From assembly GCA_001179505.1 (NCBI GenBank), contig CDMY01000335.1, forward strand, positions 51,770 to 115,769: a stretch of DNA of 64,000 nt, given 5' to 3'. Under the pieces are notes generated by a model. The model saw nothing but the letters and a program-made list of their open reading frames with translations. It was not told where the DNA came from and made no database searches. Source of the DNA: Vitrella brassicaformis CCMP3155 (lineage: Eukaryota; Protista; Chromerida). The stretch's first letter is position 1. Each line of letters opens with the position of its first letter. Of this stretch, positions 9,801 to 63,420 are shown piece by piece. A program made the translations under genes and the position numbers.

Positions 9801-12162
9801 CGAACATCTCTGCCATGTCTGTCTGCCGAAAGGTGCAATGCGGTGCGGCGCGGTGCTTACAGTTGTTCGTCGTTCTGTTCGGAGTATCGACAGTTGGGGT
9901 CGTCACACACCTCACTGCGCACACACAGACAGACAGACAGAATGAACAGACGGCTGATAATAGCTCACACACGTACCATCCCTCTGTCTGGCCGTCGTGC
10001 CAGTGGACGCCCGAGCTTGGATCCATCAGCTCCTGCAGCAGACGACTGCACACACGCACCCCACCCCACCGCAACACAACACAACACAAGACAACACATT
10101 GTCTGTGCGTGTGGTTTGTGGTGTGCGTGTGTGTATGTGTATGTGTGTGGCTGACAGCATGTCCTGCCAGATGTCGGTGGCCTGTTTGTAGAGGCGAGTG
10201 GCGTCAGTATTCACGCCAATCTGCGTGTCACACAGAGACAGAGAGGCCGTGTGTGTTGGGGATGGATGGCCATGGCCGTTAGTCACCTTGTGGATATCAA
10301 ACTTGACGCCGTGGTAAGACAGCGTACGAGATGAGAACTGGACACACACACACACACACACTACAGGCGTCTCGAAATGTGTGACGTGTGAATGTGGTGG
10401 GCCCACAACTGACTGACCAGGCCTTGAGATTTGAGGTTGATCGTGAGGCACTCCATACCTGACAGACAGACAGACAGAGAGACCCCGACCGACCACATCA
10501 AGTCATCTTGCGGTGCGGTGCGGTGTGATTCAGCCGTCCCTCCCTCACCCACCCACCCGACACGGCATTGTAGCTGATGCGCCTGTGCAGCGTGTTGAAG
10601 TCCACAAACGGCGTGTCCGGACCTGTAAGCAGACGCCCNNNNNNNNNNNNNNNNNNNNNNNNNNNNNNNNNNNNNNNNNNNNNNNNNNNNNNNNNNNNNN
10701 NNNNNNNNNNNNNNNNNNNNNNNNNNNNNNNNNNNNNNNNNNNNNNNNNNNNNNNNNNNNNNNNNNNNNNNNNNNNNNNNNNNNNNNNNNNNNNNNNNNN
10801 NNNNNNNNNNNNNNNNNNNNNNNNNNNNNNNNNNNNNNNNNNNNNNNNNNNNNNNNNNNNNNNNNNNNNNNNNNNNNNNNNNNNNNNNNNNNNNNNNNNN
10901 NNNNNNNNNNNNNNNNNNNNNNNNNNNNNNNNNNNNNNGGGGGGGGGGGGGGGGGGGGCTGCTTCCTTCGCTCCTCTGCCTTGCCTTGCCTTGCCCTGCC
11001 CTGCCCTGCTCACCAAAAACGCCCAGGCGCTCCATATAGCCCACATTTCGCAGTTCCGCAGCCGCGGTTGCCGAGCCGTAGATGACATGGGCCTTCGGAC
11101 ACATCCTCTGTCATGCATAGCCATGGCACACACACACACGTGCTGACAACAAAGCACCTCTCGCCCTCCCTCCCTCCCTCCCTCCTCCCTCCCTCTGTGG
11201 GCATGTGTGTGTAGGTGTGTGTGGCTTGCCTGCAGTGACACGGCGAGTATGGCCGAGAGCGATCCGCCGTTGGGTCTGTTCTCCTCGCTGTTTGGATTGA
11301 AGCGGCTGGGCCCACGCTCGAACTCGTTGCCCGTGGCCTGCTTCTTGAGATCTACACACACACACACACACACACAATGTGCTGCATGGCTTGGCTTGTG
11401 TGTCGTGCGGCCTGTGTGTGGCATACGTGGCGCGATGTTCTTGGCCTGACCAAAGCAGGCAGACAGGCAGACGAAGGACATTCCATTGGAGATGCATCGG
11501 CACGTCCAGCCCCTCCCTCAGTGTGTGTGAGGGACCTACCTTGTGTGACTCGTCGAACACGATGGCGCCCTCGGCTTCCGCGCCGCCCAGCCACTCGTAC
11601 AACGCACCGAAGCGACACTGCCTGACGTCCACACACACACGAACGAACGAACGAACGAACGAACGACCGATGCAATCCAATGCAATTCTGCGCTGCGCGT
11701 GGCGTAGTGAGATGTGTGGCCTGTAGATGGTGGCTTGGCTGGCTGACTGGCTCGCTGAGTTAGTTACTTTGGGTCGGTGAGGACGGTTTCGTCGCCTGCC
11801 CTGATGCGCTCGGCGACGCCCTTGTCTTTGGACTTGACGAGGTACGGGTAGGAGCAGAACAGCACGCCGTTGCCTGCATCGATTGATCCAGTGAGGTATG
11901 TGATGGATGACCACCCACCCACCCACCCACACACACACAGAGAGAGAGAGAGAGAATGAGAGAGAGAGAATGAGAGAGCGCACGCTGCGGGTGCAATGCG
12001 GGGGTTTTGCATTGCATTGTGTTAACACGCATACGCACATTGGTCGTTGCCGAGTTTGCCCTGCAGCATGGGTTTGTTGTCGCGGCCTGTGAAGAAGCCC
12101 CACTTGAGCCCGCGCACATCGGCGATCGGCAGACCCACACGCAGGTCGCCTGTGTCACCACC

Positions 12163-14361: not shown

Positions 14362-15017
14362 CAGCTCTCACATTCGAGCAGGAGAGCAGATCCACTCCCA
14401 AATGACGACAGGACGGCTGAGGCGACAGAGAACGACAGAGGGAGTGCTGTTCAAGAGGGCACACACAAAACCAGAGCCTCGTGGAATCGGGGAGGCGCAA
14501 ATGACGTTCTGGAATTGAGCTCGAGCGCGAGCTTAGCTTGCAGNNNNNNNNNNNNNNNNNNNNNNNNNNNNNNNNNNNNNNNNNNNNNNNNNNNNNNNNN
14601 NNNNNNNNNNNNNNNNNNNNNNNNNNNNNNNNNNNNNNNNNNNNNNNNNNNNNNNNNNNNNNNNNNNNNNNNNNNNNNNNNNNNNNNNNNNNNNNNNNNN
14701 NNNNNNNNNNNNNNNNNNNNNNNNNNNNNNNNNNNNNNNNNNNNNNNNNNNNNNNNNNNNNNNNNNNNNNNNNNNNNNNNNNNNNNNNNNNNNNNNNNNN
14801 NNNNNNNNNNNNNNNNNNNNNNNNNNNNNNNNNNNNNNNNNNNCCCCCCTCCCCTGACGAGCCGCTATGTCTGGTCGCGACTACGTCGGAGTGCCGCCAA
14901 ACGTCCAAACCGACTCGTCACGCCTGTACGAGAACGGGAAAGAAGATTGAATTTCATGAATTATCAGAGCCACCATGATCATCTCACCATTGCTTTGTGA
15001 CCATCATGCGAATGCAG

Positions 15018-24378: not shown

Positions 24379-27300
24379 TCACTCGATGATGAAGGGATCA
24401 GACCCTCGAGGGCTCGTCTTGGCCGACCCTCCCCCGACCGAAGACGACGACAGCTGTCGCGCTGTCCCGCTGCCCTCACCCTCACTCGACGGAATCGACA
24501 CATCTCTCTGCACAGGCGGTGCCGAGGGTGCTGCACTTGGGGGGCGGGCAGCACCTGGCGGACGTCCAGGGGGCCTTGCTCCGGGTGGCCGAGCTACTGT
24601 CGGTCTTTTGGGCAGAGGGGACTGATTGTCGGAAGAGGGAGTCGGGGCGGCCACAGACTCCGACGGGGATGACGATGACTGCTCTTCTGGTTGCGATGGG
24701 GGTTGGGATGGCGGGGCACTTGGAGGTCGCCCTGGCGGTCGACCCGGGGGTCTCGCATTGGGGGGCCGCGCAGGAGGCATTGCGGGCGGCCGAGCACTAG
24801 GTGGTCGCATCGTGGCCGGGGACGCCACCGGCACCTCTGTTGGCACTTCTACTTGATCATCTGGACTGGGCTCGACTGTGGGCGGCCGTGCTGGCGGCCG
24901 CGCACCAGGGGGTCGAGATGGTGGCCGTGCGGGGGGTCTCCTAGTAGGGGGTGGCCGCTTGGGTGCCGATGCCCCGGCTGTCTCTGTTGCATGTGCCGGC
25001 CTCTTGGCGATCTCGGATGGGGATGGTGAGTCGCCGAGCAGCGGGGCGAATTTCTTCGGCGTGGCCTTGATCTCGCGTGTGATCTTGGTGAAGGCCTTGA
25101 GGAATGTGTCGAGCGTGCCGAAGATGGCCTCCATGTGCTTGGGGTGAGGCTCCTCCCCCAGGAAACGCGTCAGCTCCCCCACCGTCTTCTGCACCTCCCC
25201 GAAGCTCTCAGTCATCTTCTGGTGAAGCTCGTCAGCCTGCGCGCGGAGGGCACGCAGCTTGGCCGCCGGCTGAGCCCTCTTGCCCGACAAAGGAGACGAC
25301 TCACCGCCGCTGCCAGCAACCGATCCCTTCTCTTTGTCCTCCCTCCTGGCCGCCGTCATGTCGCTGGGCGACGGAGACGCGGCTGATGCAGCCGAAGAAG
25401 CCCTCTCCCCTTCTGCTGGTCCTGATGATGGTCCCGCTGGCTCGTTCTTGTCCTCTTGCGTCGATTCCTTGTTGTTGCCCCCCCTCTTGAGCTCATCGAT
25501 GACGTCGTCCTTCAGGAATAGCGTCGAGTGCAGCTCCTTGGGCGACACGTCAGCGAGGCCGAGTGGGGATGACTTGCTGGATCGTCGAGAGGAGGGCGAT
25601 TGGGAGTGGGCGGACTTGCCGAGGCGGCGGAGGTTGCCCGTCGACAGGGGGCGGGTGAGGGTCAGATGGATGAACGGACCCGCCTGGCCATCCGACGGCT
25701 CTGACATCACACAACAGACAGACAGACAGACAGGCAGACGACGCCGCCATGCGTGCGAGGAATGCGTGGATGGTATGGTCTCTGGCTGCCCTGTCTGTCC
25801 GTACCTTGTTTGGTGTCCTTGGTGGTCTCCTGTTTGGTGTCCGTCGGCTTGGATGACGGCAGTGGCGGAATGGTGAGGGCGGCAGGCCGACGCTCTTCCA
25901 TCTTGCTCTCACTCGCGGCACCATTCCCTCTTTTGGCCTCTGCCGCCGACTCTTTCGCTGCTGTGGCGTCAGTGGGCTGCTCTTGCGGTGGTGATGATGT
26001 CTTGTTGCCGTCCTCCACACCTGGCTCATCCTTGCTGGTGCCCTCTTGCCCATCCTTCTTGCCCACATCGGCAGCTGGAATTGAACCTCAAGAAGGAAAA
26101 ACGGAGAGCACTCACCCACGTCTTCGTGTTGTCTACATCTTGTGTCGCATGCGCCTACCTTCGGTCTCATCCGCGGCAGGCTTGCTGCGGCCCCCCTCCT
26201 TGTCTTCTCCTTCTGTCGATCCTTGTGTCGGCTCCTCCTTCTTGCCCTCTTTCTCCGCTACTGTCTTGCCCTCTTTCTTGTCATCGCCATCGGCCTTGCC
26301 GCCTCCCCTGTCGCCGTCGTCCACGGCGTACTCTTTGATGTTCTCATCCTTGAGTTCCTCGTCGAGTATCGCCACGCCCTTCTTGACGCTGTCGACCCCC
26401 TCCTGCAGGATCTCGGTCGACACGCGCGCCGCGACGGGGACGAGCGGCATCTCGCTCGGCAGCTCCGCGAGCTCTGGCGCACGGGCGATCATGTTGTAGA
26501 CGATGAAGTGCAGGGCCGACAGGGACGGGTCGACGGCCGTCTTGAAGTCGCTGAGCTTGAGGAGCGAGTTGAGGGTAAAGCCACGCGTGTGCAGCTGGAA
26601 GGACCCGTAGTTGATCCAGTTGCCCCACAGCAGCACCAGCTGCAGCACTCGTCGGAGCGACATGGACGACCGCACCTGGTGCGACGCATCGCGGAGGGTC
26701 ACCAGGTCCTTGTACACGTCCATCTCGACCACCGGCAGGGCCAAAGCGAACCGCAGGACAGCCACACGGGGATGCACACGGGGGACGAAACAGAAGGGCA
26801 GCACGTGCCGCTCGATCTCGCGGAGCTGGGCCTCCTCACCCTTGACGGCGATGAGCAGGGGTCTCTCTTCGTCGGTTGGCAGGATCTGCTCCACCTTCTC
26901 GAGTTCCTCGCTGCTGAGGTCGTCACCGTCGAGCCACTTGAGCTTCTCCGCCACGACCGACGTCGGAAGCGTCAGGCGCGCACAGATGATGCCCACGTTC
27001 TGCGCCCGCTTGGAGTCGAGGACGGCCTTCTTCTGCTCGACCTTCTTCTCCTTTGCCTCGGGTTTCTTGGCGCCCTCCTTGGCTTGCTGCATGAAGACCC
27101 GTGCGATGGTTTTGGTGTCGACGAGCAGCGACGTGACGGCCGGGTTGGCCACGATTTTGTCCTCCTTGAACTCGCTGAAGATGGTCCCGTGCAGCTTGGC
27201 GTCGCCCAGTTCCTTCCAGTGGATCTTCCGCCCCAGCGGCGGCTTGGCCGCCGGACCGCCCTTGCCACTCGCGTCCTTGGCCTTGGTTATCGGCGGGCCC

Positions 27301-30300
27301 TTGCCCTTGACAAGTGGCGGACCCTTGCCCTTCAAGGGGGGGCCCTTGCCGCTCGGGGGTGGCTTGGGTGGCGCCGCCTTGCCGTCCTTGCCTGGTGGCG
27401 GCCGTGGTGGAGTGCCCTTAGCTACCGGAGGCCGGGCGGGACCTGCGCCAGATGGCGGGGCTTTCCCGGGTGGAGGGCGGGGAGGCACGCCCTTGCCCAC
27501 CGGTGGCTTGACCGCCTTGGCTGCCACGTCGACTGACTCTGCCTCGCCTCCCTCCGTCTGGACGTCGGTGGATGTCGATGTGCCGGCAGCCTCGGAGCGT
27601 GGGCGAGGGGGAGGGGGAAGAGAGGGGGCTGAGGGACGGACTGGCCCGGCGGTTGCTCCAGACACCGACGCCTTCCGTGACGGCGGACGGCTGGTGCCTT
27701 CTGCGACTCCATCAGCTGGCGGCTCTTCCTCCACCCCGTCGAGCCCCGACGGCCCCGCCTGAATGGCCATCTCGGCCATCTCAGGCTTGGCTGCCTGAAT
27801 GGGTGGCGACCCGGCCGCGGACCCAGCAGCGCCGGGCGGCAGGTGCTTTTCGATGCGATTGACCACGCCCTTGACGAACCCAGATGGCAGAACCTCCTCA
27901 GCCTTGCCGTCGAGCGGTGACGGCAGAGGGGCCACACGCCCCTCGCGCACCACGCCCTCGTCTGACGTCGACCGGAGCCGCGAGTCGATCGACGTAAATG
28001 GCGGGGCGATGGCGGCACCGACTCCTTCTGAGGTGGCGGGAGGCGCGAGCGAGGTCTCCTCGACCATGGCTCCGCTGATGGACGAAGGCGGCATCTGAGT
28101 GACGGCCATGCCCTGCATCGAGTCCGCATGGGAGGAGACGACCCCGGCCAATGCGGCCGGGCTGCCGAACAGCAGATGCTGTGCGTGCAGGATGTTGGGG
28201 GACACGTGGACGATGGCCGGAGGGGTGAAGGGGTGCACCAGCGGCATGTTGGTGGGCGTGTCCAGCCGGTGCACGGCCGACTGCTGCGCCAGGCCCGACG
28301 AGACGGTCAGGGGGGCCGACGAAGACGTCAGGAATGACGCCGACTCGTCGCTGAAGCGCTCCACGGCGCCTGCGATAGAAGGGTGCTCGCCCGACACACT
28401 CAGCCTCAGATGCTCCCAAGTGCTGTCGGCCCTCGACTCGAGCTGCCTGGCCAGGAACGACAGCGAGTGCCAGCCGGAGGGGCTCCCGCTCCCAGCACTC
28501 GGCGACCCGCCCGCACCGCCACCAGGAACCACCGCACTGGAGAAGTTGCCATCGCCTGGTGGCTGTGGGAAGGACACTGCGTACGAGGGCGCCTTTGCGG
28601 TGGCACTGACCCCACTCCTGAAGGCCTCACTCATCTCTGCGATGGCCCGTGACCCTTGCCGTGACGGACTCGCAGCGTCATGCATCGACTCGTCCGGGAA
28701 AGTGATCATCGAGCCCGACGGCTGGATGGCCAGCGACGGCAGCCGCGGGGGCCACGGGACTGCAAATAAAACAATAAGAAGCAGGGATGAGTTGGTGGTC
28801 GTGGTCGGTGCGTCGATTTGTATGTGGTGTGCGTATTATACCTTGTGGTGTGCCTTCCACTTGCCGGCCTTCTTGCCGCCGCCACACGGGCACAATGGGT
28901 CTGGCGGGGTGCGTGGGGCCGGTGGTGGCCGAGACGGTCGTGTCAGTGGACTCGACTGATGCGAATGAGATGCCGTCAGAGTGTGTGGGGGTGGGGGAGC
29001 TGGGGGTGGGGCCGGCAGGAGCAGCGGCGGCTGGAGCAGGCCGCATCCACTTCTTGGGGACCTCTGAAACACGAGAGACGAAGGAACATCAATCAATCAC
29101 GGCATGAGACAAGGCATTGCATGACAGCACTCTCGTGCACATGTCTCCATCCATCCACCCATTCCACCTGTTCCAGATGGTCTTGCGGCTGCTGCATCTT
29201 GTTGGTCGACATTGAGGGGCACCAGCTCGGGCACCGGCTCCATCACCTCGACGCCCCTCTCGCCCCTCTCCTTCCCCCGATCGTCAGCAGCCATCTCCAC
29301 CTCTGACCAATCCATCGCCGGCCCACTCCCATGCATGTCACCGACGCCCGCATCGCCCGTGCCCTCGGTGATGCTGAACACTCCCTCACCCTCACCAATC
29401 TCACCAATCGGACCCAGAAACCCATTGCTGGCGCCTACCACTGGCTCGGGAAAAGCGCCCGTTGGGAGCAGTCGCACGCCTCCCGGCCGCTCAGAGGGGA
29501 GGGGCCGCTGGTGCTGGTGCCGCTGCGCCCTCTGATGGTGGTGGTGGTGGTGTGCATGGGATGGGCCCCTCACGCCCGCGAGGGCTGGCCGCGATGGGGC
29601 CGGGGCGATGGGTGAAGGTCGCTGGCGGGGGTGGTAGTGTGCCGGGCCGAAGATGGGCCCTTCCAGGCTGCCAGTGTCGTGCCGACTCCAGGAGCCACCA
29701 CCATCAGACATGACGCCGCTGCCGCAGCCACCATGGTCGGGAGGGCCTGATGTCGCCGACCTACTGGACAGCGACACAGGCGAGTCAGACCGGCTGATAG
29801 AGCCCTCCAGCAAGGCTCCATGGGATCGACGCGCCAGCCCCTGTGTTGTCACCTCTTCGCTGGGCGCCAGCGACCGGTGGGTCGGCGCACTCCCGTACTC
29901 CAGCGGGACGTCCTGCTGCAGAAAACCGGGAGCAGTGCCGAACAGGCGACCCACGGGCTTGCCGTTTGGTGCGATGAAGGCCGGTGGCGGCGAAGAGAAC
30001 AGGCGTTGGACCTGTGAGCGGCTGCCCACTGTGTCGGGGGGGCCGAAGTGCAGCGCCACAAAGTTGAGAGCGGGCACGAGCTCGTTCCTGCATATCTTCA
30101 GGGCCACTTCCGCGTCCTCCCTCCTGCAGCCCATCTCCATAAGGTCCTTCAGGATGCCCTCGTCGGCCGACAGCATGTGCCGACCCACAAACTCCCTCGC
30201 GTCAGCCACGGGACGCCTCACACGCTTCCGCGACGCACGGTCGTCCCGACGCACCTCCACTGTCGGCAGTCTGGGCGACGGCGACAGGCTCATCTCCTTC

Positions 30301-33221
30301 CTGCCGCCGCTCGGCCGACCAGCGGTGTCTCGTGGTGTAATCGGCCGACTGATGTCTCTTGGCGTGGTTGGGACGGAGGCTTCAGGCCCCTGTGGCTTGA
30401 CCGCTTCACGTGTCGGGGATGAGGGAGGGGCGGATGTGGCGGGGNNNNNNNNNNNNNNNNNNNNNNNNNNNNNNNNNNNNNNNNNNNNNNNNNNNNNNNN
30501 NNNNNNNNNNNNNNNNNNNNNNNNNNNNNNNNNNNNNNNNNNNNNNNNNNNNNNNNNNNNNNNNNNNNNNNNNNNNNNNNNNNNNNNNNNNNNNNNNNNN
30601 NNNNNNNNNNNNNNNNNNNNNNNNNNNNNNNNNNNNNNNNNNNNNNNNNNNNNNNNNNNNNNNNNNNNNNNNNNNNNNNNNNNNNNNNNNNNNNNNNNNN
30701 NNNNNNNNNNNNNNNNNNNNNNNNNNNNNNNNNNNNNNNNNNNNGGGGCTGGGGGGCACAGATGATGCTGGGGGTGCGTCAGCGAGGTGGGGAGGGGGCG
30801 GGATGAGCAAAGGCACCTCACGCTCCTCTTGCATGGTCTGGTCGGCGGGGCCCGGTGACACCTTGTGTGCCGCGTGCTGATGGAGGAAGATGAGCGACAT
30901 GCTTGGCTCGAGGGCGGCCGCCAGCTCCGGGTCGCCGTCCTTGTCAGTGTCTCCGAAGAGGTGCTGGTCGATGCCGATGTCGATGTCCATGTCGGGCCGC
31001 TTCACCTCCACCATGTCATGCACACCAGGATGCAGGAACCCCGTGTGGAAGGCGTACGCCGCCAAGATGCCGCCCGGCATGTCCAACGACGTCCTGTCGC
31101 CCCGGTCCTTGGTCGACGTGACCTTGCGTCTCTTGGAGTCGGGGCCCTCTGCCTCGGTCCTGAAGCCCTCCGACTCCTCGCCTCCGCTGCTCTCCTTGTC
31201 GCCCTCCACATCCATGTGCGCTGGAGGGGTCGAATCAGAGCGCCGCACAGACGACCGCGGGGGCGACAGGGACGGCGCACTGCTGCCCTCCTCGTGGTCT
31301 CGCTCCCGCCGTAGCCGCTCCTTCAGCTCTCGCTTCCGCTTGAGGTAGGCCGCTGGCTGTCGCAGCCGCACCGTCACCACTACGTCGCCCCGGATCTCCC
31401 ACTGCATGCGCTTCTCGCCCTCTCTCGGCCCACCCTGTCGAGATTCGTCGTCCCTGCCGCCGGCGTGCGTCAGATCCAGAAACACCAGCGCCGTGTCTTC
31501 CCGCTGGGGGTTCCACGCACACACCTGCGATGGCGGACCGGCCCTCTTGTTCCCCTGCGGCGCCGGAATGGTCTGGGACGTCATGATGCGGAAGTCGGGT
31601 TCGCCGATGTAAGGACACGCCTCGAAATCCCAGGTGGGCTCATCCTCTCGAACGCCGATGGGCACGTGTTCCTCGTCTTCGCTCTCTGTGTCGTCCTTCC
31701 TATGCCTCCCCTTCTTGGCGTCGCGGCCGTATTTGGCGTAGGGGGCGGGGCTGGAGGTGTGAGCCCGTGGCGGGCTTTTGGCTGCGAGGGGGAAGGGGGG
31801 ATAGGGGTCATACCTCTCTCCGCTCCCTCTCCTCCTGCCCTGGCCGTCGGCCGACCCCCTCCTGGTCTTCTTGGTCGGTGTCGCCTTGGACACACTGCTG
31901 CCGCCGCCGAAGCCCAGGAACCCAGTGAACCCCTGAAACATCGACGAGCCGCCAGAGGACCGGCGGGCCGGCGGCTGAGACGGGGCCACCGATTTGACGG
32001 ATGACGGGGAGGGTGACATGGCAGGGCTCTTGAGAGTGATTAGGCTGGGGGGCGTCGAGCAGGCCGTGCTCGAATCGGCCGACCGGACGGGACCAGTGGC
32101 GCGCAGGTGGTAGACCTCCACGACGAGGTCCTCTGGTGGCGCGGGGAAGTTGCGAAGCATGATGCTCTTCAGCATCAGCGGCTTGGCCTGCACCGCCGCA
32201 TGCACGTGGCGGTGGGGGTGGTCCTCATGGTGCTGCTGCTGATGCGCGTCGTGCGATGGCGACCCCTCCGGCCCCCTGCCGTCATGGTCGTGGTCGTCTG
32301 GCGGCCTTAATGGCCTTGGGTCCTTGTCAAGCACATGCTTGAAGTAGGTGAGGTACCGCCGGGTCGCTGAGGGCCACTGCCGCAGTGGTGGGCATGGGAT
32401 GACCTCAGGCCGCCTGCTGCCCGCCGCAGAGGACCGCACACCGCCCTCTCCTCCACTGGCGCTGCCCTCACTGCGGTCGCTCGCGTGTCTACTGTCGGGT
32501 GAACGACGTGACGAGGGCCGATGGTCAGACAGCTGGTGGCCATTGGCTGCGTCGGAGAGGAGCAGTGAGGTCTCCCTGATGGTCTGCACCACCTCTGCTG
32601 GGGTTGCGCGGGGGTGCAGGGTCAGCATCAAGCACGCCAGAGCCAGCAGCACACCGTCCGTAGCATTCTGAGACAACACAACACAAGCAGGGAGGGAGGG
32701 AGAGGGAGTCGCATTCTGTGTTCTTCTTCAACGGGTGCATTGTCGTATGTGTATCGCGGACGGACCTCGAAGTGCAGGACGGCGATGTGGTCTTTGGGCT
32801 CGAGCTGCATCCAGTAGAGCATGGAGCTGCAGAGGCTCACGAGCTCTGTCAGCGGCGGTGGCGTGAAGAACCACACGGGCATCGGGTAAGACAGAATTTG
32901 CTCGCGGAAGCTGGAGCGAAACATCAGCAGCCGGCCGAGGTCGTCGGCCTTGTGCAGGTTCCACACCACATAGTAGCTGCCGAGGCCGTCCAGGAAGCCC
33001 TTGAGCTGCTCCACGTTGTTGAGGGGCTTGAAGGGGCTCGTGTGGAACTCATAGGGCGACCGACACACCCACACGCGGCTGGCTATCTGCGCCACGTGCA
33101 GAGGGACCGGGGGAGGCGACACGACCGACTGACTGGGGGAGGGAAGGGGCGACGGCTGGTCCTCATATGCTCTGCTGCTGTGGCGGTCATCTCGGGGAGA
33201 CTTTCGGCTCCCGAACATCAT
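24379..33221 (-). CDS. Large PTEN-C2 type formin (apicomplexan FRM2 / plant class II-like): pseudophosphatase, C2, UBA-like, FH1, split FH2, C-terminal Pro/Arg tract
   Basis: PTEN-like YYVVWNL..HIAVLHFE|NATDG, RRYLTYF and KPLMLKSIMLRNFP; FH1 poly-Pro (~27250-27520); FH2 lasso KIHWKEL, KRAQNVGI (key Ile), GNWIN, GFTLNSLLKLSDFK (key Lys), and RFLGEE..IFGTLDTFLKAF. Phase-consistent introns at ~32767/32669, 29169/29064, 28841/28761, 26160/26087 and 25805/25701. Confidence 0.92.
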
Positions 33222-33666
33222 TATGGGGCACTCATGGGACACCTGGACTGTCCATCAAGATGGCATCAGCAGCCTGACACGACATCAACACACACACCAA
33301 GCGCACACACATAAACGTCGTTCTCTCTCCCCATGTCTGTGCGTCTTCCAAACTCTTCAGCATACATACGGTGTTGCTGACCTGTTCATGGCCGCCTGTC
33401 ATTTGCGATAAGCATCGGGATGGCCGCACAGTGGCAGCACATATATCAAGACGGCCCAAACACGACAACTCACCAAACCAACCGCTAGAATCTTGTGCTA
33501 TGGAGCAATGTGGACCACTCTGAGTTCCTTACCCTCAAAATGCTCAGCGCGCCCGCCTTGCGAGCTTAGCTTGCGGGATGGCGCGAGCGTGAAGATGAAG
33601 GAAAGAGAACGATTCCGATGCTGAGGAAGTGATTGGTGTGTGTGCGAGTGCTTCGCCAGCCTGCAG

Positions 33667-35351
33667 ATGTGCTGTCCAGAGGATGTGCTGGCTGATGACG
33701 ACATCAGTACGGATGTTTTCGCTGCTTTGGTTAGTTTGTGTGTTACCTCGGTGCCCTGTCAGAGCATCGTCTTTCATCCCCGTCCCAGCCGTGACCGTCA
33801 GCGGCTCACCTCGGCGCATCCGATCAACCATCACGCGACTCGGAGCGGCGAAAGGTTGGCCCATCCCATGGCTCTGCGCATTTGCAGCTAAGCGAGCTGC
33901 CCGTACCTGCGGATGGAGTTCTCCTTCGAAGCACAAAGCCGGCAAGGTGCGACCGTTCCTTGCAACAGGTGGGCTACCGTGGCGAAGGTGGAGCCGCTGC
34001 CGGCCACTCGGAGCCTCCTGTCCAGGCACCTGCTGCCGCACTGGATGAGGGGGAGGTAGGGAGATCTGACAACAGGCAATCGAGTGCACTGGATGTGACT
34101 GTCTGCATGCCGCTGTCTTCCACGTGGTGTGTGTGCGCTGATCGATCAGGTGCTGGATTGGACGCCCGAGTTCTACCCTGCACAGGAGAACATAGAGCAA
34201 ATGAAGCTGCAAGTTAGGATCAACAAACGACTTCCGCTGCCCAAAGTGACAGTGCCAGTTGAAATGCGCCGGTTCTTCTTCGATACCGCATACTCGGCCG
34301 GAATCAAGGGCATCTTGACAAAGTGAGTGAGCCAATACACACATACCTATGCACACACGAACACACTCCCCAGCCAACACCCCCGCAACACCGACCCGCC
34401 CACTGTTGTCTTTGTGTGTGTTTCATCAATAGGACCTTAAAAGTGAGCCGCCGGCCAAGGAACATTACCTACGGTGGCTATTACTTCTGGCTTCTGGTGC
34501 GTGGGAGGGTGGCACATCCACATCCAAACACACAGTCATACGAGTCGGTCGGTCGGTCGGTCGGTCTGTCTGTGGTGTGTCGATCAACCACCCACGTACC
34601 TAAATGCAGATGTATGAGCTGGTCCGTCAGACCGATTGGCGGGTGGTTGTGTCTGCCGTGGACGGGCCTAACGCCGACGACGGGCATGATTATGGCGATG
34701 GCGGCGATGACTACGATCCGGAGTGGGACGAGGACGAGGAGGAGGAGGTGGTGGTGGAGAAGGAGGACGTATTCACCCTCATCGTCATCGAAAAGGATGG
34801 CCTCAACCTCAAAATCAAGAGCGAAGAGTCAGCCAGTGTGTCGAGTGTGTGTGCTTGACAGACAGACAGACAGACAGGGATGGAGGGAGGCTGCGATGTT
34901 TGTGCGTATGCGTCCATTGACGGTGTGTGTGTGTGTGTGTGTTTGTATGTATGTGTGTGTGTGTGTGTGTGGATGTGTGTGCAGCGACGGGACGTTGTTT
35001 GCCGTGCTGATGGGCGTCCAGCTGAGCAACAAGGCGTACGACGACTTGATATGGCTCATGCGTGATCGGGGCATCACGCAGTGTGCAGCTGTCATCGAGA
35101 AGAGGTGGTACTGCAAGTACTTGGACCACGACACCAACAAGCTGGTGGACACCATGGATGAGCCCATCCATCTGGTTGATGAAAGCGGGATGGGCGCGCA
35201 GAAGGCAATTGACTACATTCTAGATCGCCTGCAGCACCCAGACAAGAAGGAAGAACCAGAGGGCTTTCAGGGGCCGACGTTGGGGGACATAATGGCGGAC
35301 TTCGCGGCGGCTACGGGGGGTAGAGAGACGCCGATAAGTGTGACTGGCTGA
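33667..35351 (+). CDS. Catalytically degenerate PD-(D/E)xK (HsdR-N-like) nuclease paralog, multi-exon; N-terminal exons uncertain
   Basis: Exons 34150-34322, 34433-34496, 34610-34827 and 34985-35351 splice in frame: ..KRLPLPKV..DVFTL..DDGTLFAVLMGVQ..WYCKYLDHDTNKLVDTMDEPIHLVD..AIDYILDRL. This aligns by eye with the convergent ORF but has M-G-V where that ORF has E-V-K. Confidence 0.7.
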
Positions 35352-35513
35352 CTGACTGACTGACTGACTGACTGAGATACATATGCTGGCTATCTAGTCA
35401 CTCACATGTATATAACTGGATGGACGGAGTGATCGTATGTATGATGCCGTCCAGCCAGGCAGCTGTTTGGACGGCTCGAATGAATGAGGAAGAAACGACA
35501 CAGACGCAAAGCG

Positions 35514-36479
35514 TTAGAGGCCAGCTTGTTTTTGTGCGTGGGCGATCTGTGTGCAATTAAAGTATGAGAAGGAAGGAGGGAGGGGGCGAAAAGTTTGCCG
35601 GCGCGATGCATAGATTATGCGTGACAGACTTTCCTCAAATCTCTGCGTCTCATTCAAGTGGTCGTTTCTTTGAAAAAATGTCATACAGCAAAGGGCAATA
35701 AGGCATGGAAGTCTTCTACATATATGACGCTCTCTTGTACATACGGACCCCTCCACGTGACGCACATGCCCGATTTCACTTGCCCTCACTGACCCCTGAA
35801 GCTGACGATTGCATCCTTCATTTCTCCGCAAACGCTGGAGTCTTGTCCTATCGCGATTAGACCGTAGCCCATTCGGTCTTCTTCCATCGGGCAGACAAGC
35901 CAGAATCCATTCCACCACAGCCTCCACGCTCTGCTGAGGATCAATGAGCTCGAGGGGCCTTCTGTTGTCCACCAGCTTATCGGTAATGGGATCCCTTCTA
36001 CAAAATTCCCACTTATTGCCATCGCTGCACGCATACCATTCGACTTGCAGTGCCCCTTTTTTTTCGTTTAGTTTCAGCCTCATGTTGTATCTCTCAAGCT
36101 GCCCAAACACCGTGTCGAGCTCATTTGGTATTTTGACCTCAATGATCAAGAAGGGAACATTGTCGCATGCAAGTAGATAATCTGGACGTAGGTCGTCTTT
36201 TCTTGTCAACTTGCTGGTCTTGGGATCGCGCAGCGTGAAAACAGGCCTGTTCAATGTCTTGGACCAAAGATGATCATCATAAAACGTTAGCCGCCCACTC
36301 GTCACCAAGTAAAGATACAGCAGCATCAAATTGATAGTCTTACTTTGATATTCCCTCTCGTTTGGCGGCTGGACGTAGTGAATGGCGTCCTTCTCGATTT
36401 CATTAATCGTCCGTCTTGTGATTTGATCGAGTAGGCGAGGGACTTTCAGTAGCGGCAGTGCAGGCCTATCAACTGTCAT
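35514..36479 (-). CDS. Intronless PD-(D/E)xK restriction-endonuclease-fold protein resembling type I restriction R-subunit N-terminal (HSDR_N-like) domains
   Basis: RPDYLLACDNVPFLIIEVK..FGQLERY..WYACSDGNKWEF matches the PD..ExK..Q..Y..(T/S)(N/D)G..W signature. First ATG of the domain at 36479; the true C-terminus may lie in another frame (stop at 35786). Confidence 0.8.
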   Translation of the reverse strand: MTVDRPALPLLKVPRLLDQITRRTINEIEKDAIHYVQPPNEREYQSKTINLMLLYLYLVTSGRLTFYDDHLWSKTLNRPVFTLRDPKTSKLTRKDDLRPDYLLACDNVPFLIIEVKIPNELDTVFGQLERYNMRLKLNEKKGALQVEWYACSDGNKWEFCRRDPITDKLVDNRRPLELIDPQQSVEAVVEWILACLPDGRRPNGLRSNRDRTRLQRLRRNEGCNRQLQGSVRASEIGHVRHVEGSVCTRERHICRRLPCLIALCCMTFFQRNDHLNETQRFEESLSRIIYASRRQTFRPLPPSFSYFNCTQIAHAQKQAGL

Positions 36480-36624
36480 CTTAGCCACAATAACCGACGG
36501 CAAACAGCGGCTGCGGAGCGCGTAGGGTGAAGGCCACGCAGCTGAAGGTCGATGAAAGCTGACGAATGCCTGAATAAAGAGACTAGCAGATGAGTCATTG
36601 AGGGGACAGGTGGCTGTCTTGCTC

Positions 36625-37309
36625 TCACCTTCTATAAAGCAGACGTGCCGATGACGGAAAGACAAATGCACACAAGCATAGAGAACACCACGATACATCA
36701 CATTCATCCCCCCCTCTATCCTTTCTGTCCACCAGTGTGTGGGCCATTCTATGTGAGTTGACTGGATTGTGGGAGAAGGGCAGAGAAAACGTACTGCTGC
36801 AGTGATTCACCAACCTGAACACATGCACACGTTCCTGTGTACGTGCATCGCTGTTATGTCCATAATGAGAGTGTACCATTCGTAGGGAGGGATGGTGCCG
36901 GTACGCGATGAAAATAGGCAGAGATGACACCCCCTGAACTCAGAAACCACGCACATGTGTTCCCTGTGTGTGTGTGTGTGTGTGTGTGTCTGTGTGTCCG
37001 TGTATGTGTGTGTGTCTGGGTCACCTGTCGAGCGAGTGATAGGTGGAAGTCGGCATACTCAGCTGTGCAAGGGACAGTCAAGATGATCCATTGCGTACAG
37101 CCTCGCGGCACATTAGCATCCCAACAGAGGGCCGCGGTTGACTCCTCTGAGACCGTGCTGAAACACAACTCAATGTATTTCGTAGTCTGCCATGGTGGCC
37201 GCATGGTCTCCCATGATCTATATTTCTGTTGATCCACCTGCCTACGTGGTCTGTACTTCATGCCCATCACAGCAAGGGGTAGATGAAGTACAAGGAGGAA
37301 AAAGATCAT
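36625..37309 (-). CDS. Signal-peptide-bearing exons of a hypothetical secreted protein, possibly the 5' part of the nuclease gene
   Basis: MIFFLLVLHLPLAVMG-MKYRPRR.. from ATG 37309; donor CAG|GTGACC at 37025/37024; next exon GVSSLPIFIAYRHHPSLRM in phase. Confidence 0.45.
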
Positions 37310-37449
37310 CGTGGATATGTGACCCAACTTCAGCTGCATCACCTACACACACAACACAACAGCATCGGTCAGTCAGGACTGAAGGACTGATGGCCTTTCC
37401 TTTGGTGTGTGCTCATGATTGACCTGAGAGAGTGCTGTGCTGTGGAATA

Positions 37450-40400
37450 TGGCCTCACCCGGCTGCTGTTTGCACTTCAGAGCCTTTTGCGAGCTTGCAA
37501 ATGCTGCAGATCCGGAAAGAGATGCATTGGATGTATGCGACGAGTGTGCTGTGCCATGTGGTGCATCTGACGAGAAGCGAGAAGTGAAGTCGGCTCTGAT
37601 CTTCATTCGTAAATTTCTGCTCTCGGGCTCCCTTTGCGCTGCCAGGAGCACAGTCGGCTGCCGTTGTCAGAAGAGCCTGATCGGAGCGTTGGTCTCTTCT
37701 GACTTCAGCTGGGCATCAACTTCGGAACCGCTTGCCAGCCTCACAGCACTGCAGATGCCGACAGAAGATGGTCGACGAATCTGATGCAGTAGTCATGAGA
37801 AGGACACGAAGAGATCCTCAAGTTTGAGCTCGCAACATTGGCCCGCTCCTGCCCCCAACTCGTCCTTCTCTCCCCTCCCCAAAAAAGAAGCGCTGAATGC
37901 GTCGCCATCAATCGCGAAGTTGAACCGAGTGGGCTTCCCATCCGTGATGTCGAGGCGTGAGCACCCCTGGTTCGCCTACGAGGCGTTTGCGGCGGAGGCC
38001 AGGGAGAAGGACGCGCAGACGGAGAGAATGACCAGACCTGATATGGTGCACATGAGAGTGAGGGTGGAGGTGAGTGCCGCACAAAAAACACACAGACGAA
38101 CGACAGAGTCTTGTTGGTGTTTTTCTTTCCTTGTGTAGTCGGAGCCCGTGCAGCGGCTGCTCCGCAGAATCAAGGCGCCCACGGCCAGCAGGACGCAAGA
38201 AGAGGGACGCACGACAACAGGAAAACGCCGTGCGGAGGGCGAGCAAGAGGACGATGGCCGCCCGCCGCTCACCGTGGTGACCCTTCTCCCCGACAAGGCG
38301 GCCCATTATCCCTACAAGTATCAGCGGCGGGCGACCAGGGCCCCGCCAAACCTGACACGAGTGGAGGCAATGGCGCGGAGCGCTGACAGGCCATCCCCGC
38401 CAGCTGCAGCCAAGCAGCGTCGTGACGAGCCAGCGCCCTCGCCGGTCCCACCCTTGCTTCTCCCTCGCCCTCGCCCTCCCCCTTCCTCCCCCACGACTCT
38501 CTCCGCTCGGCGGCTGTCAAAGCGTTCACAGCAGGGCGAAGAGGCTGATACTGGCCGGCCGGAAGAGCAGCAGGAGCGGGAGGACAGAGATGGAGATGAG
38601 CTGCTGCTGGAGCGCTATATCAAGAGAAAGACCCAACAGCAGCAAGAAGGGGTTGAGCAGCCCAGAACGCTCGAGACGCCCTCCACGTGCGCTCCGTCGC
38701 ATGTGGCTCCCTCACCGCCTTCCCAGCACTCTCCTCGGCCCCTGTGGTCTGCCTATCGGGCCCACCGCCGCCTTGAGACCTCTGCAGCAAGAGGTGCCGA
38801 GACCGATCGGCGGCCGATGACGGCGCCTGTCGGCAGTGCGAGGACAGGACAGGCGAGAGCAAAGGAAGGCAGTTTTGCCACTCCACGCGTCTCGCTCTCG
38901 ATTGCCCCGTCAAGCCGCCCGTCGACGAGACGGCGCCAGAGGCCGACTGGCAGACGAGGGGAGTCCCCTCCACCGTCCCGTCTCCTTCCCTCGCCAAAGC
39001 ACGCCAGCGTGTGGGTGCGCGAGACACTCACCGCCGGACAGAGTCCACGGGCGGCCGCACACGAGGATGCCAAGCGGCGGCTGGAGGCGGCGAGAGAGCG
39101 ATTCCGCTCTATGCAGCGGCGCCAGGCCGCTGACAGTGAAAGGGAAGAGGTCGTCTTGCTCGCGCTCACTTTCCTCGAGAAGATCAAAGTATGAGACAGC
39201 ACAGATTCATATGGCCGGTCCACACATATTTGTCCTGCACACGCACGTGTCTGTCCTGCATTCTCCTGTCAGGTGGACGAGCTGACAAACCTTACTGAGC
39301 TAAAGCGGTCCTTCTCGCGGACCAACCTGGGCCTTGGCGTGTTGGAGGGCGGGCTCGAGGAGGCCGATCACTTCGAAGACATCGACGCCCACCCCATCTC
39401 TCTACTCTCGATGACACAACCTGGCCTGTTGGGTAAGGATGAGTCGACCACGGTGGCCAAGGGCGACAAGCGGCCTGGGGGCCACCCCAGCAAGAAAGCC
39501 ACAGGGCCGCTGATGCGATCTTCGACAACTATGAGTCGGCGGACGGTGAGAGAGCGACACCTCATCCACCAGGTGCTCAAAGCTCTCAGGTCAGTGGGTA
39601 GGAGAGTCAGCCGAAATATACGTCAAGAGACCCTCGATCGCCAATCGATGTCCTTGACTGTGCGGATGTGTGTGTGTGTCCGTGCAGGCGGCTGGGAGAG
39701 AGGACACAGTCGCACAGACTGGCATCTACAACCGCTCTCGGCGACGGTAAGTAGGCAAGCAAACAACATCCGATCAGCATACATACAGTACACTACACGC
39801 CCCCTTCGATGGCTGTGTGCCTGCCGTCAGCTGAATTGGGCTGGGTGCGTCGGCGCATTTATCCCAAGGAGAAGAAACCCGAAAAGAAGTACAGCTCGGT
39901 GTGGGGCGAATCGTCGCCCATCGGTGGGTCTCCCGCACAGGTCACCCGCGGGCTCTCTCGCCGGTCGGTGTCCCCGTGGCGGCGGACACTCGTCGAGGAG
40001 GCCAAGAGACACATGACCGCTGCTGCTGGGACGACCAGCGCTATGAGTGACAACCTCCGGTCCGCATTCAAAAGCGTCATTCGCATGGCAAGCCACCGGC
40101 CCACACACTCACTCACTCATCGGCGACACATCCAAGGGACACGCGTATGGCTCTCTGCTTGTCTGCGTGTGTGATCATGCAGGTGAAGGCTGATGACGCT
40201 GAACGCACCACCACCCGCACCATTCTTGTGAGCGAGGAGGGCAGCCCGTCTCGCGGCGGCCTCAGCACCCCCGCCGCGTATACACATACACATTCTCACA
40301 CGCCGTCAGCGGCATCGTCTGCGGTCGGCGAAGAGGATGCCAGCCCACCCATACCGACCAAGTCCAAGCCCTCCCGCCTTGGCAGCAAGAGGCGCGTGAC

Positions 40401-61519: not shown

Positions 61520-63420
61520 TCNNNNNNNNNNNNNNNNNNNNNNNNNNNNNNNNNNNNNNNNNNNNNNNNNNNNNNNNNNNNNNNNNNNNNNNNNNNNNNN
61601 NNNNNNNNNNNNNNNNNNNNNNNNNNNNNNNNNNNNNNNNNNNNNNNNNNNNNNNNNNNNNNNNNNNNNNNNNNNNNNNNNNNNNNNNNNNNNNNNNNNN
61701 NNNNNNNNNNNNNNNNNNNNNNNNNNNNNNNNNNNNNNNNNNNNNNNNNNNNNNNNNNNNNNNNNNNNNNNNNNNNNNNNNNNNNNNNNNNNNNNNNNNN
61801 NNNNNNNNNNNNNNNNNNNNNCCCCCCCTGCCCCTCCTCGCCATGCCCATGAGTACGTGGGGCGGACGGACAACCATTGGTCGGTCCAGCCGCCCCAAAC
61901 CCATCTCTATCACCAAAGTTCGCCACCGTGTGTGAGGTGCGCTTCTGCGAATTCTCCACCGCTCGACAGGCGAGGGGAGGGGAGAGGGCGAAGGAGGGTT
62001 GAAGGAGGGGTGGAAAACGGGAACAAGCGGATGCCGAGCCGTCGTGCCGAGTCACCAGCCAGCAGGAGCAATAGTGGGTCGATCAGTGGGCGGGGAAGGT
62101 GTGTGGGTGTGGGGGTCGATCAAGCGTTTGGGTCGACCTCGACCTCGACCGTGACGCGTCCGCCGCCGAGTTGGCTGATCTTGGCCGCCCACTCGTCGCG
62201 CTGAACCAACACACGGAACCCCAAACTCGACTGAACCACAGCAGATATGATGGAGACGAGAAGCATGGGTTCGTGTCGCGTGTGCGCTTCCCTCCCACCC
62301 TCCTTCCCTCTCGTACCCATAGGGCCATGGTCTGCCGGTTGAACTGTCCGATGAGCTGGCTCCGAATGGGGTACCGCAGGGCGAATCGGTCGCAGCGGTA
62401 GAGCGGGCTGAGAAACTCGTCGATCGATATAGTGCTCACCGACGTCTCGTCAACCAGCATCGCGTACGCCAGCCAGCACAGCGGCAGGAAGCGCCACAGA
62501 AAATCCTCGTCGTTCCGGGCGTACTCAAGCGAGAAGCGCTTCTCGGTCGCTGACGACGGGGCGTGGGCGAGTGGGGGAGAGGGAGAGGGGGACGGGTGGC
62601 TGCTGCTGCTGCTGGTGATTGTGTCACTTGCGTGGTGGGATGGCGAGAGTCGCTCGTTGAGGCAGAAGCATATGGCGACGATGGACGGCAGGAGGCCGTC
62701 ACCGCCGCCCCGCCGCACCAACCGGTCCAACAGGTGTGCGATGCATGAGCAACGGGACGACTTGGCAGAGATGTTCGCCTGCAGGCAAACACGACACAGC
62801 ACAACACCAACAGACAGGCTCTCCACTTGTTTGCCCGAGAGTGAGGAGGGTATCTCACAGCGTGCGTACCTGTCGGCATACGAATGACAGGGCGAGAGTC
62901 ACCTCGGCGGAGAACTCTGACGGGTCGGCCGTCAAGCTGTCCCGGTCATCAGCATGGCACCGCAGCCCGCAGCCGACATCCACTGACTGGCCGTGGTCGA
63001 GCGCAGGGTGAGGAGTCGTCTGAGGCGTCCGCCACCTGAATCAGAAGCAGAGAGATGTGCACGGAGAGGAGACATGACGCCAGTGACGCGTAGACACCCC
63101 TCATCCCTTCCTTCCCTCCCCACGTGTATCCTGACGTACCTGACAGGCGTGTCGGCAGGTGGGGAGTTGAGAGGCGTGAAGTAGGACACTGAGTCACCCG
63201 CATCTGGCGAGCTCGGCACGTCGCTGAGCTCCCGGCTCACGTGGGAATGGGACGAGCAAGTGGTGCTCGCGTCAGAGGTGGTGCGTGACCGACAGACGGA
63301 GGCGTCGTCACGATGGTGCTGCACGAAGAGCGTGCAGCGGTCGCTGACGGCGGGTGCATCCTTGCCGCCGTAGAGGTCACAAGCGGGAATGCACGCGTGT
63401 GGGAGAGGCATTGTGGGTGG
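60393..63420 (-). CDS. Probable multi-exon hypothetical protein gene, interrupted by a gap; extent uncertain
   Basis: Protein-like GC3-rich exons: HLLDRLVRRGGGDGLLPSIVAICFCLNERL, EDFLWRFLPLCWLAYAMLVDE..FLSPLYRCDRF and EITAFGTPLRAVHAFANELLRCL; no family recognised. Confidence 0.45.

Follow-up and report, generated by a model that had tools for sequence, protein, structure and literature searches.

The 64-kb window analyzed here, from contig CDMY01000335.1 of assembly GCA_001179505.1, is nuclear DNA of the free-living chromerid alga Vitrella brassicaformis CCMP3155. It holds two neighboring genes in convergent, tail-to-tail orientation: a plus-strand gene, whose product is identical to CEM02767.1 and belongs to a small protein family, and a minus-strand gene, whose product carries a signature of the type found in PD-(D/E)xK nucleases. 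Three transcript assemblies (a JGI re-assembly of MMETSP data, SRR646408 and ERR558152) match the window at 100% identity, and with these three data sets both genes are real and transcribed. An initial annotation of this DNA had described an intact restriction-fold nuclease beside its catalytically dead paralog and had proposed that the two form a toxin-antidote, nuclease-inhibitor or effector-decoy module. Its observation is partly confirmed and its interpretation partly supported by the analysis reported here, with the nuclease-type reading and the paralogy being plausible but under-powered.

The minus-strand gene is laid out as follows:

35346..37482, minus strand: the gene as transcribed (three assemblies, 100% identity)
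37482 (or further)-37424, 37342-37246, 37157-37025, 36933-36877, 36814-~36733 and ~36571-35346, minus strand: exons of the mRNA
35514..36479, minus strand: open reading frame (ORF) of the domain, 321 amino acids (aa) from the ATG at 36479, with the stop codon at 35514-35516
35865-36479, minus strand: globular part, residues 1-205 of the protein
36441..36458, minus strand: N-terminal L-P-L-L-K-V motif
36087..36182, minus strand: catalytic-type signature D100, E114-V-K116 and Q127-L-E-R-Y131, on which the sub-threshold Pfam and PHROG matches center
35889..36038, minus strand: C-terminal block, residues 148-197, aligned with the plus-strand family
35346..35513, minus strand: 3' untranslated region of the mRNA, from the transcript assemblies

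The globular domain of about 205 aa contains D100 within R-P-D, E114 and K116 within I-I-E-V-K, and Q127-x3-Y131 within G-Q-L-E-R-Y, with Q127 lying 11 residues past K116; all of these strings, together with S-D-G-N-K-W, are present as they were initially quoted. D, E-x-K and Q-x3-Y in this order are the residue set of RecB-family and HsdR-N-type PD-(D/E)xK nucleases. The composite motif D..hh-E-x-K..Q-x3-Y in its hydrophobic context arose in 0.15% of shuffled sequences. Library matches on the same motif were obtained with Pfam HSDR_N (PF04313; expectation value (E) 0.048, 13.9 bits against a gathering cut-off of 25.1), Pfam HSDR_N_2 (PF13588; E 0.051, 14.1 bits against a cut-off of 25) and phrog_4225, annotated as 'endonuclease' (E 0.043, below threshold). 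Scans of NCBIfam and PADLOC gave no matches, and all matches in the PHROG scan had E > 0.005. On the strength of the motif and the concordant sub-threshold matches, the minus protein is best read as an HsdR-N/RecB-type PD-(D/E)xK nuclease, which we consider probable. The initial assignment to an HsdR-N-like nuclease is thereby upheld as far as motif and sub-threshold matches go, while falling short of the curated thresholds.

Searches for relatives of the minus domain returned the protein alone. This was the case for a word-indexed search of 5.8 billion clustered proteins, for an exhaustive phmmer search against 1.84 billion representative proteins, and for PDB sequences and JGI metagenome contigs; judged by these sequence searches, the minus protein is an orphan, a singleton. 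No hydrophobic signal or leader was seen at its N-terminus.

The ORF encoding this protein spans 35514-36707 on the minus strand, with the conserved part beginning at the ATG at 36479. Since its 397 codons are far above the maximum of 206 reached in 2000 shuffles of the same region, the ORF is real and is not a chance ORF. Over the first 205 residues after the ATG, GC content at the three codon positions (GC1/2/3) is 0.54/0.36/0.55, a coding-like pattern; the GC3 of 0.55 compares with 0.67-0.76 in three of the four plus-gene exons. The mRNA contains five introns, all upstream of the single exon (36571-35346) that holds the domain ORF. The gene is thus not intronless, as had been stated, only the domain ORF being confined to one exon, and because the gene has five introns the idea that it arose as a retrocopy loses its premise. 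At the fifth junction (~36733/~36571), one base present in all three assemblies fits neither flank under a GT-AG split, for which a very small exon, a non-standard splice site or a difference between strains may be responsible. A transcript-derived ORF, P0001 (409 aa), starts farther upstream, in exon 3, and appears to begin with 88 residues of translated leader sequence.

In the NCBI gene set (GCA_001179505.1) the minus domain ORF is unmodelled, and a 174-aa model is placed on the upstream exons instead (36749-37606, minus strand). Because the frame of this model is interrupted by a stop in the real transcript, we rejected it as what the minus mRNA encodes, and the locus looks mis-annotated in the public gene set.

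The plus-strand gene comprises the following features:

33667..35351, plus strand: the gene in the NCBI model CEM02767.1, 350 aa (P0006)
33589 (or earlier)-34055, 34150-34322, 34433-34496, 34610-34827 and 34985-35351, plus strand: exons in transcript L001, with the stop codon at 35349-35351
33683..33850, plus strand: signal-peptide-like leader segment with a hydrophobic core, V-R-A / S-S-F and an S/R-rich stretch, located by tblastn with the leader of the family member P0010
34231..34248, plus strand: L-P-L-P-K-V motif at the N-terminus of the protein, matching L-P-L-L-K-V of the minus protein
34787..34807, plus strand: I-E-K-D-G-L-N, invariant in all five members of the family
35079..35234, plus strand: C-terminal block, residues 261-312 of P0006, the only stretch with statistical alignment support

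This gene contains introns, as initially described, being spliced in the natural transcript contig L001 at four junctions that are all GT-AG, and its product contains all the plus-strand strings that had been quoted. The NCBI model starts at 33667, and its first intron, 33730-33887, is retained in L001. Two independent assemblies of the minus mRNA end at 35346 and 35348, adjoining the plus stop codon at 35349-35351, and L001 reads through both genes. From these assembly ends and the read-through we conclude that the two transcripts, lying tail to tail, probably overlap at their 3' ends as natural antisense RNAs.

The family of P0006 has at least five members (P0006, P0009, P0010, P0012 and P0014), with domain identities of 45-84%. 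Single-sequence and profile searches for relatives returned Vitrella sequences only and a metagenome scan returned none, while a PDB sequence search with the family profile gave one match at chance level (E 2.2). No Pfam, NCBIfam or PADLOC model matched the family, and its PHROG matches were at noise level. Invariant charged motifs of the family are E-L-V-R-Q-T-D/E-W-R and I-E-K-D-G-L-N. Between the plus gene and its closest paralog, the ratio of nonsynonymous to synonymous substitution rates (dN/dS) is 0.43-0.46 at a dS of ~0.17, which points to some purifying selection on the gene. A RAP/FASTK-type or Vsr-type domain, considered for the family on account of a D-G-P motif, was rejected, there being no Pfam match at E <= 1. 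One further sequence, P0008 (MMETSP Transcript_13387), joins the N-terminus of P0009 to the body of P0006 and is probably a chimeric assembly of these two 79%-identical paralogs.

Comparison of the two proteins by BLASTP gave an E of 0.11 at full length, which is not significant, and of 0.016 with the last exon alone. When the minus domain was scored with a hidden Markov model (HMM) of four paralogs, hmmsearch placed the real domain 20th of 5001 against shuffles. With a domain-only profile of five paralogs, hhalign aligned residues 146-197 of 204 with residues 148-197 of 205 at E 4.5e-4, and the score of 30.9 compares with a mean of 13.2 (standard deviation 2.4, maximum 22.7) over 274 composition-preserving shuffles, corresponding to a z-score of ~7. 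Significance is reached at the profile level only and for the last ~50 residues only. Smith-Waterman alignment (gap penalties -8/-1) yielded z-scores of 5.0-5.4 for P0006 and P0012 and of 2.5 for P0010. In addition, P-L-x-K-V occurs at the same offset in both domains, a motif found within the first 20 residues in 0.1% of shuffles, and the domains are nearly equal in length (204 aa in the plus protein, 205 aa in the minus protein). At the DNA level, the sole match between the genes is 22 nucleotides (nt) long at 86% identity, over common T-x-K-L-V-D codons; an inverted duplication between the genes was not found at this level, nor any repeat structure bracketing the pair. With post hoc selection allowed for, the sequence comparisons make distant homology of the minus and plus proteins likely. 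The claimed paralogy accordingly holds as a probable, distant one, carried by hhalign, the shuffles and P-L-x-K-V and not by plain BLASTP.

The middle of the domain, which includes the putative active site, aligns in three mutually exclusive ways. In the alignment of the initial annotation, D-G-T-L-F lies opposite D-N-V-P-F, in agreement with the order of secondary-structure elements in two low-confidence models. MAFFT places T-D-W-R-V-V-V opposite R-P-D-Y-L-L, and I-E-K-D-G-L-N adjoins I-I-E-V-K. The hhalign maximum-accuracy alignment sets L-Y-L-I-E-K opposite F-L-I-I-E-V-K and D-G-T-L-F-A opposite L-D-T-V-F-G. The alignment that had been said to run along the whole domain is thus recovered for the last ~50 residues and for P-L-x-K-V and not for the middle blocks, where the quoted V-F-T-L pair and the D-G-T-L-F / D-N-V-P-F pair represent one alignment out of the three. 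Neither the composite motif nor Q-x3-Y occurs in any of the plus-family members examined, and the family lacks a canonical E-x-K; on this sequence evidence a variant or lost active site is a defensible reading. The reported lack of E-x-K stands insofar as no member carries the composite motif, and is qualified by the invariant L-I-E-K-D-G-L-N, which lies opposite I-I-E-V-K with hhalign and beside it with MAFFT. With three competing alignments of this region, the description of the plus protein as catalytically dead is unproven and depends on which of them is right.

Members of the plus-strand family differ in their N-termini. By eye, P0010 and P0014 begin with a leader composed of a basic n-region, a hydrophobic core of ~12 residues, a V-Q-A/V-R-A site, S-S-F and an S/R/H-rich stretch, and this leader shares the reading frame of the domain in transcript L004 (P0010) and in a transcript-derived complete ORF (P0014). 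Plastid proteins of chromerids carry a signal peptide followed by a transit peptide, often with a Phe after the cleavage site (PMC6668581). The leaders of P0010 and P0014 resemble such bipartite leaders in their n-region, hydrophobic core, small-x-small site, nearby Phe and S/R/H-rich stretch, and differ from them in that the Phe lies 2-4 residues past the likely cleavage site instead of directly after it. Judged by these features, P0010 and P0014 are probably routed into the secretory or plastid pathway.

In the DNA, the leader is also kept, at 56-62% identity, at the P0012 locus and at the window gene. Leader segments of the family lie at three loci: at 33683-33850 (plus strand) of the window, at 10001-10189 of L007 and at 9851-9967 of L008. 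In tblastn, the P0010 leader matches the window segment with 56% identity over 41 aa (E 4e-12), while the same type of search found no leader at the P0009 locus. The NCBI models of P0006 and P0012 omit it. At the window gene the leader lies in an ORF (33629..34048) whose frame differs from that of the annotated start and of the domain exons, a further departure from the bipartite arrangement. Because the window leader is out of frame, the argument that the products of the two genes would reside in different compartments is limited to the other family members. In the window subfamily targeting may have been lost, or an additional splice may exist that was not assembled.

To relate the pair to the rest of the family, the loci of P0009, P0010 and P0012 were taken with 10-kb flanks on either side. 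A tblastn search with the minus protein found no relative within 10 kb at any of these three loci (E > 1). Directly downstream lies a gene for a tubulin-tyrosine-ligase-like protein at P0009, for a trypsin-like protein at P0010 and for an OTU protease at P0012. The initial annotation had itself counted paralogs that are unlinked elsewhere as a refutation of its proposal, and since the three paralog loci have no minus-type neighbor, the toxin-antidote, nuclease-inhibitor or effector-decoy module fails by this standard. The inference of a two-gene module is not supported.

We favor the reading that the pair, arranged tail to tail, goes back to an old local duplication, followed by strong divergence, in a Vitrella-only family derived from the PD-(D/E)xK fold, and give it about an even chance of being correct. 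The duplication would have produced a minus copy that keeps the canonical residues and would act in the cytosol or nucleus as a metal-dependent nuclease with nucleic acid as its substrate. As a derived branch, the plus family would have a changed or lost active site, and in at least two members (P0010 and P0014) an N-terminal leader would direct the protein to the secretory pathway or the plastid. That the genes are neighbors would be a relic of the duplication and not a functional coupling. A separate history of the minus gene is possible, considering its single-exon domain and lower GC3.

Several results weigh against the duplication reading. No family match of the minus protein reaches a curated cut-off in Pfam, NCBIfam, PADLOC or PHROGs. 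The PD-(D/E)xK fold, with its alpha-beta-beta-beta-alpha-beta core, is not demonstrated for either protein, because the AlphaFold models are unusable and there is no significant Foldseek match: AlphaFold2 gave a mean predicted local distance difference test score (pLDDT) of 36.7 for the minus domain from a single sequence and of 42.8 for the plus protein from four sequences, and Foldseek found no match at E <= 0.001 with either low-confidence model, the matches of the minus model being meaningless. Several entries of the restriction-endonuclease (REase) fold, namely Hjc 2eo0, 3ijm, Cas4 4r5q, HsdR 4beb/7bst and CidB 7fiv, turned up below significance when the plus model was searched with Foldseek, a soft hint only. 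The hhalign probability of the pair was only 33%, the gene pair was picked post hoc from the 64-kb window, and the non-significant BLASTP result and the three-way alignment of the domain middle count on the same side. So does the window leader, which is one frame change away from the domain in the only available transcript. Finally, the minus ORF is preceded by a ~520-nt spliced leader with upstream ATGs, and its C-terminal ~110 codons are without a coding-type GC signature, so that its translation is unproven.

Some of these points would be expected if the genes were two unrelated orphan neighbors with a chance or compositional similarity noticed post hoc, an explanation that we regard as unlikely. 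The BLASTP E, the rank of only 20th of 5001 in hmmsearch, the hhalign probabilities of 6-33% and the absence of a stable alignment in the domain middle speak for it. However, composition-preserving shuffles never came near the real hhalign score, the aligned block is located equivalently in the two domains, which are of equal length, a separate N-terminal motif is common to both at the same offset, and the weak similarity was seen again with three different paralogs. Just as unlikely in our estimation is that the minus ORF is not, or no longer, translated, being a decaying or non-coding downstream ORF in which the nuclease motif is a relic. NCBI left it unannotated and modelled the 174-aa product on the upstream exons, the spliced leader contains not only upstream ATGs but a first upstream ORF of ~57 codons, the C-terminal tail lacks the coding GC pattern, GC3 is low for this genome, and the protein is a singleton without relatives. 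Against this, the ORF is far longer than expected by chance, its domain part has a coding-type GC pattern with the catalytic-type residues all intact, the rival 174-aa model is weaker and its frame is stopped in the real transcript, and the transcript is present in three data sets. Lower still in probability is domain shuffling, in which the proteins would have in common only a C-terminal module of ~50 aa (two strands and a helix) and a short N-terminal motif, around non-homologous cores. Only those two stretches align reproducibly, and the invariant E-L-V-R-Q-T and I-E-K-D-G-L-N of the plus family have no clear counterpart in the minus protein; yet the total domain lengths are equal (204 and 205 aa) and both low-confidence models show a similar predicted order of secondary-structure elements.

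The linked two-gene module of the initial annotation, in which the plus protein, as a paralog without activity, would bind or inhibit the active nuclease or serve as its decoy, appears very improbable. The genes are adjacent and convergent with 3' mRNA ends that probably overlap, their proteins are probably homologous, the plus family is without the full motif, and the leader may be lost from the window plus gene, in which case both products would share a compartment. But the arrangement occurs once, with three other paralog loci devoid of a minus-type neighbor, and the searches found no relative of the minus protein. PADLOC gave zero matches, there is no mobile- or selfish-element context, the neighbors being a formin gene and unannotated genes, and other family members, among them P0010 and P0014, bear secretory or plastid-type leaders. 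A more specific form of this idea is a paralog-based nuclease/anti-nuclease pair in a free-living alveolate alga, in which a neighboring member of the same diverged family, devoid of a leader, would restrain a putative active stand-alone PD-(D/E)xK nuclease, with the tail-to-tail mRNA overlap coupling their expression; this we likewise consider very improbable.

Compared with known systems, the minus protein shares with the HsdR N-terminal/RecB nuclease motif a D at the start of a hydrophobic strand, an hh-E-x-K ~14 residues further on and then, ~10 residues past the lysine, Q-x3-Y. HSDR_N and HSDR_N_2 are its only Pfam matches, both on the motif region, although with scores below the cut-offs. 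In contrast to type I restriction-modification systems, the domain is stand-alone (~205 aa) and encoded in a eukaryotic nucleus by a gene whose leader exons are spliced, without a fused superfamily 2 (SF2) helicase and without an HsdM/methylase or HsdS/specificity partner. Crinkler or CR-type eukaryotic effectors, to which the initial annotation had also referred, carry restriction-endonuclease-fold toxin domains, preceded by an N-terminal header domain and a secretion signal. What is similar is that a probable REase-type domain occurs in a eukaryotic protein, within a lineage-specific family that may include copies with altered sites. Unlike Crinklers, the minus protein has no Crinkler header domain, the HSDR_N families being its sole Pfam matches, and no secretion signal, and Vitrella is a free-living alga and not a pathogen; no Crinkler feature was found. 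Among the papers searched, none linked Vitrella to Crinklers. With nuclease-immunity or toxin-antidote pairs, such as CidA/CidB (encountered here as a non-significant Foldseek match), the locus has in common two adjacent genes, one with a nuclease-type signature. It differs from them in that the partner is a probable paralog instead of an unrelated binder, the pairing is unrepeated at three other family loci, and a selfish-element context is absent.

If the duplication reading is true, Vitrella holds an unannotated, lineage-restricted gene of nuclease type, a very divergent member of a known superfamily, along with a small family from the same fold, some of whose members would be sent to the secretory or plastid route. 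This would be a further case of the reuse of PD-(D/E)xK domains in eukaryotes and would correct the public annotation at the locus. On present evidence the pair does not amount to a genetic system of a new kind, as the toxin-antidote idea fails the test of repeated linkage.

The surroundings of the pair are ordinary. Directly upstream of the plus gene, in head-to-head orientation, lies a formin gene (24379-33218, minus strand; FH2 domain, E 5e-53), and the genes on the other side, downstream of the pair, are without Pfam matches. A mobile-element or viral context was rejected, the neighboring genes being ordinary, and none of a mobile-element, viral or selfish-element kind was found around the pair. 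An Rfam scan of 32000-39000 returned zero matches. The formin gene contains long low-complexity S/P/R-rich stretches, and its ORF at 30406-32679 is broken by one 300-N scaffold gap; gaps of exactly 300 N each lie at 10639-10938, 14544-14843, 30445-30744 and 61522-61821. The introns of both genes of the pair hold long microsatellites of the (TG)n/(CA)n type (34900-34980, 36947-37027 and in other introns), and runs of (GACT)n and (GTCG)n are found near 35340-35375 and 34545-34570.

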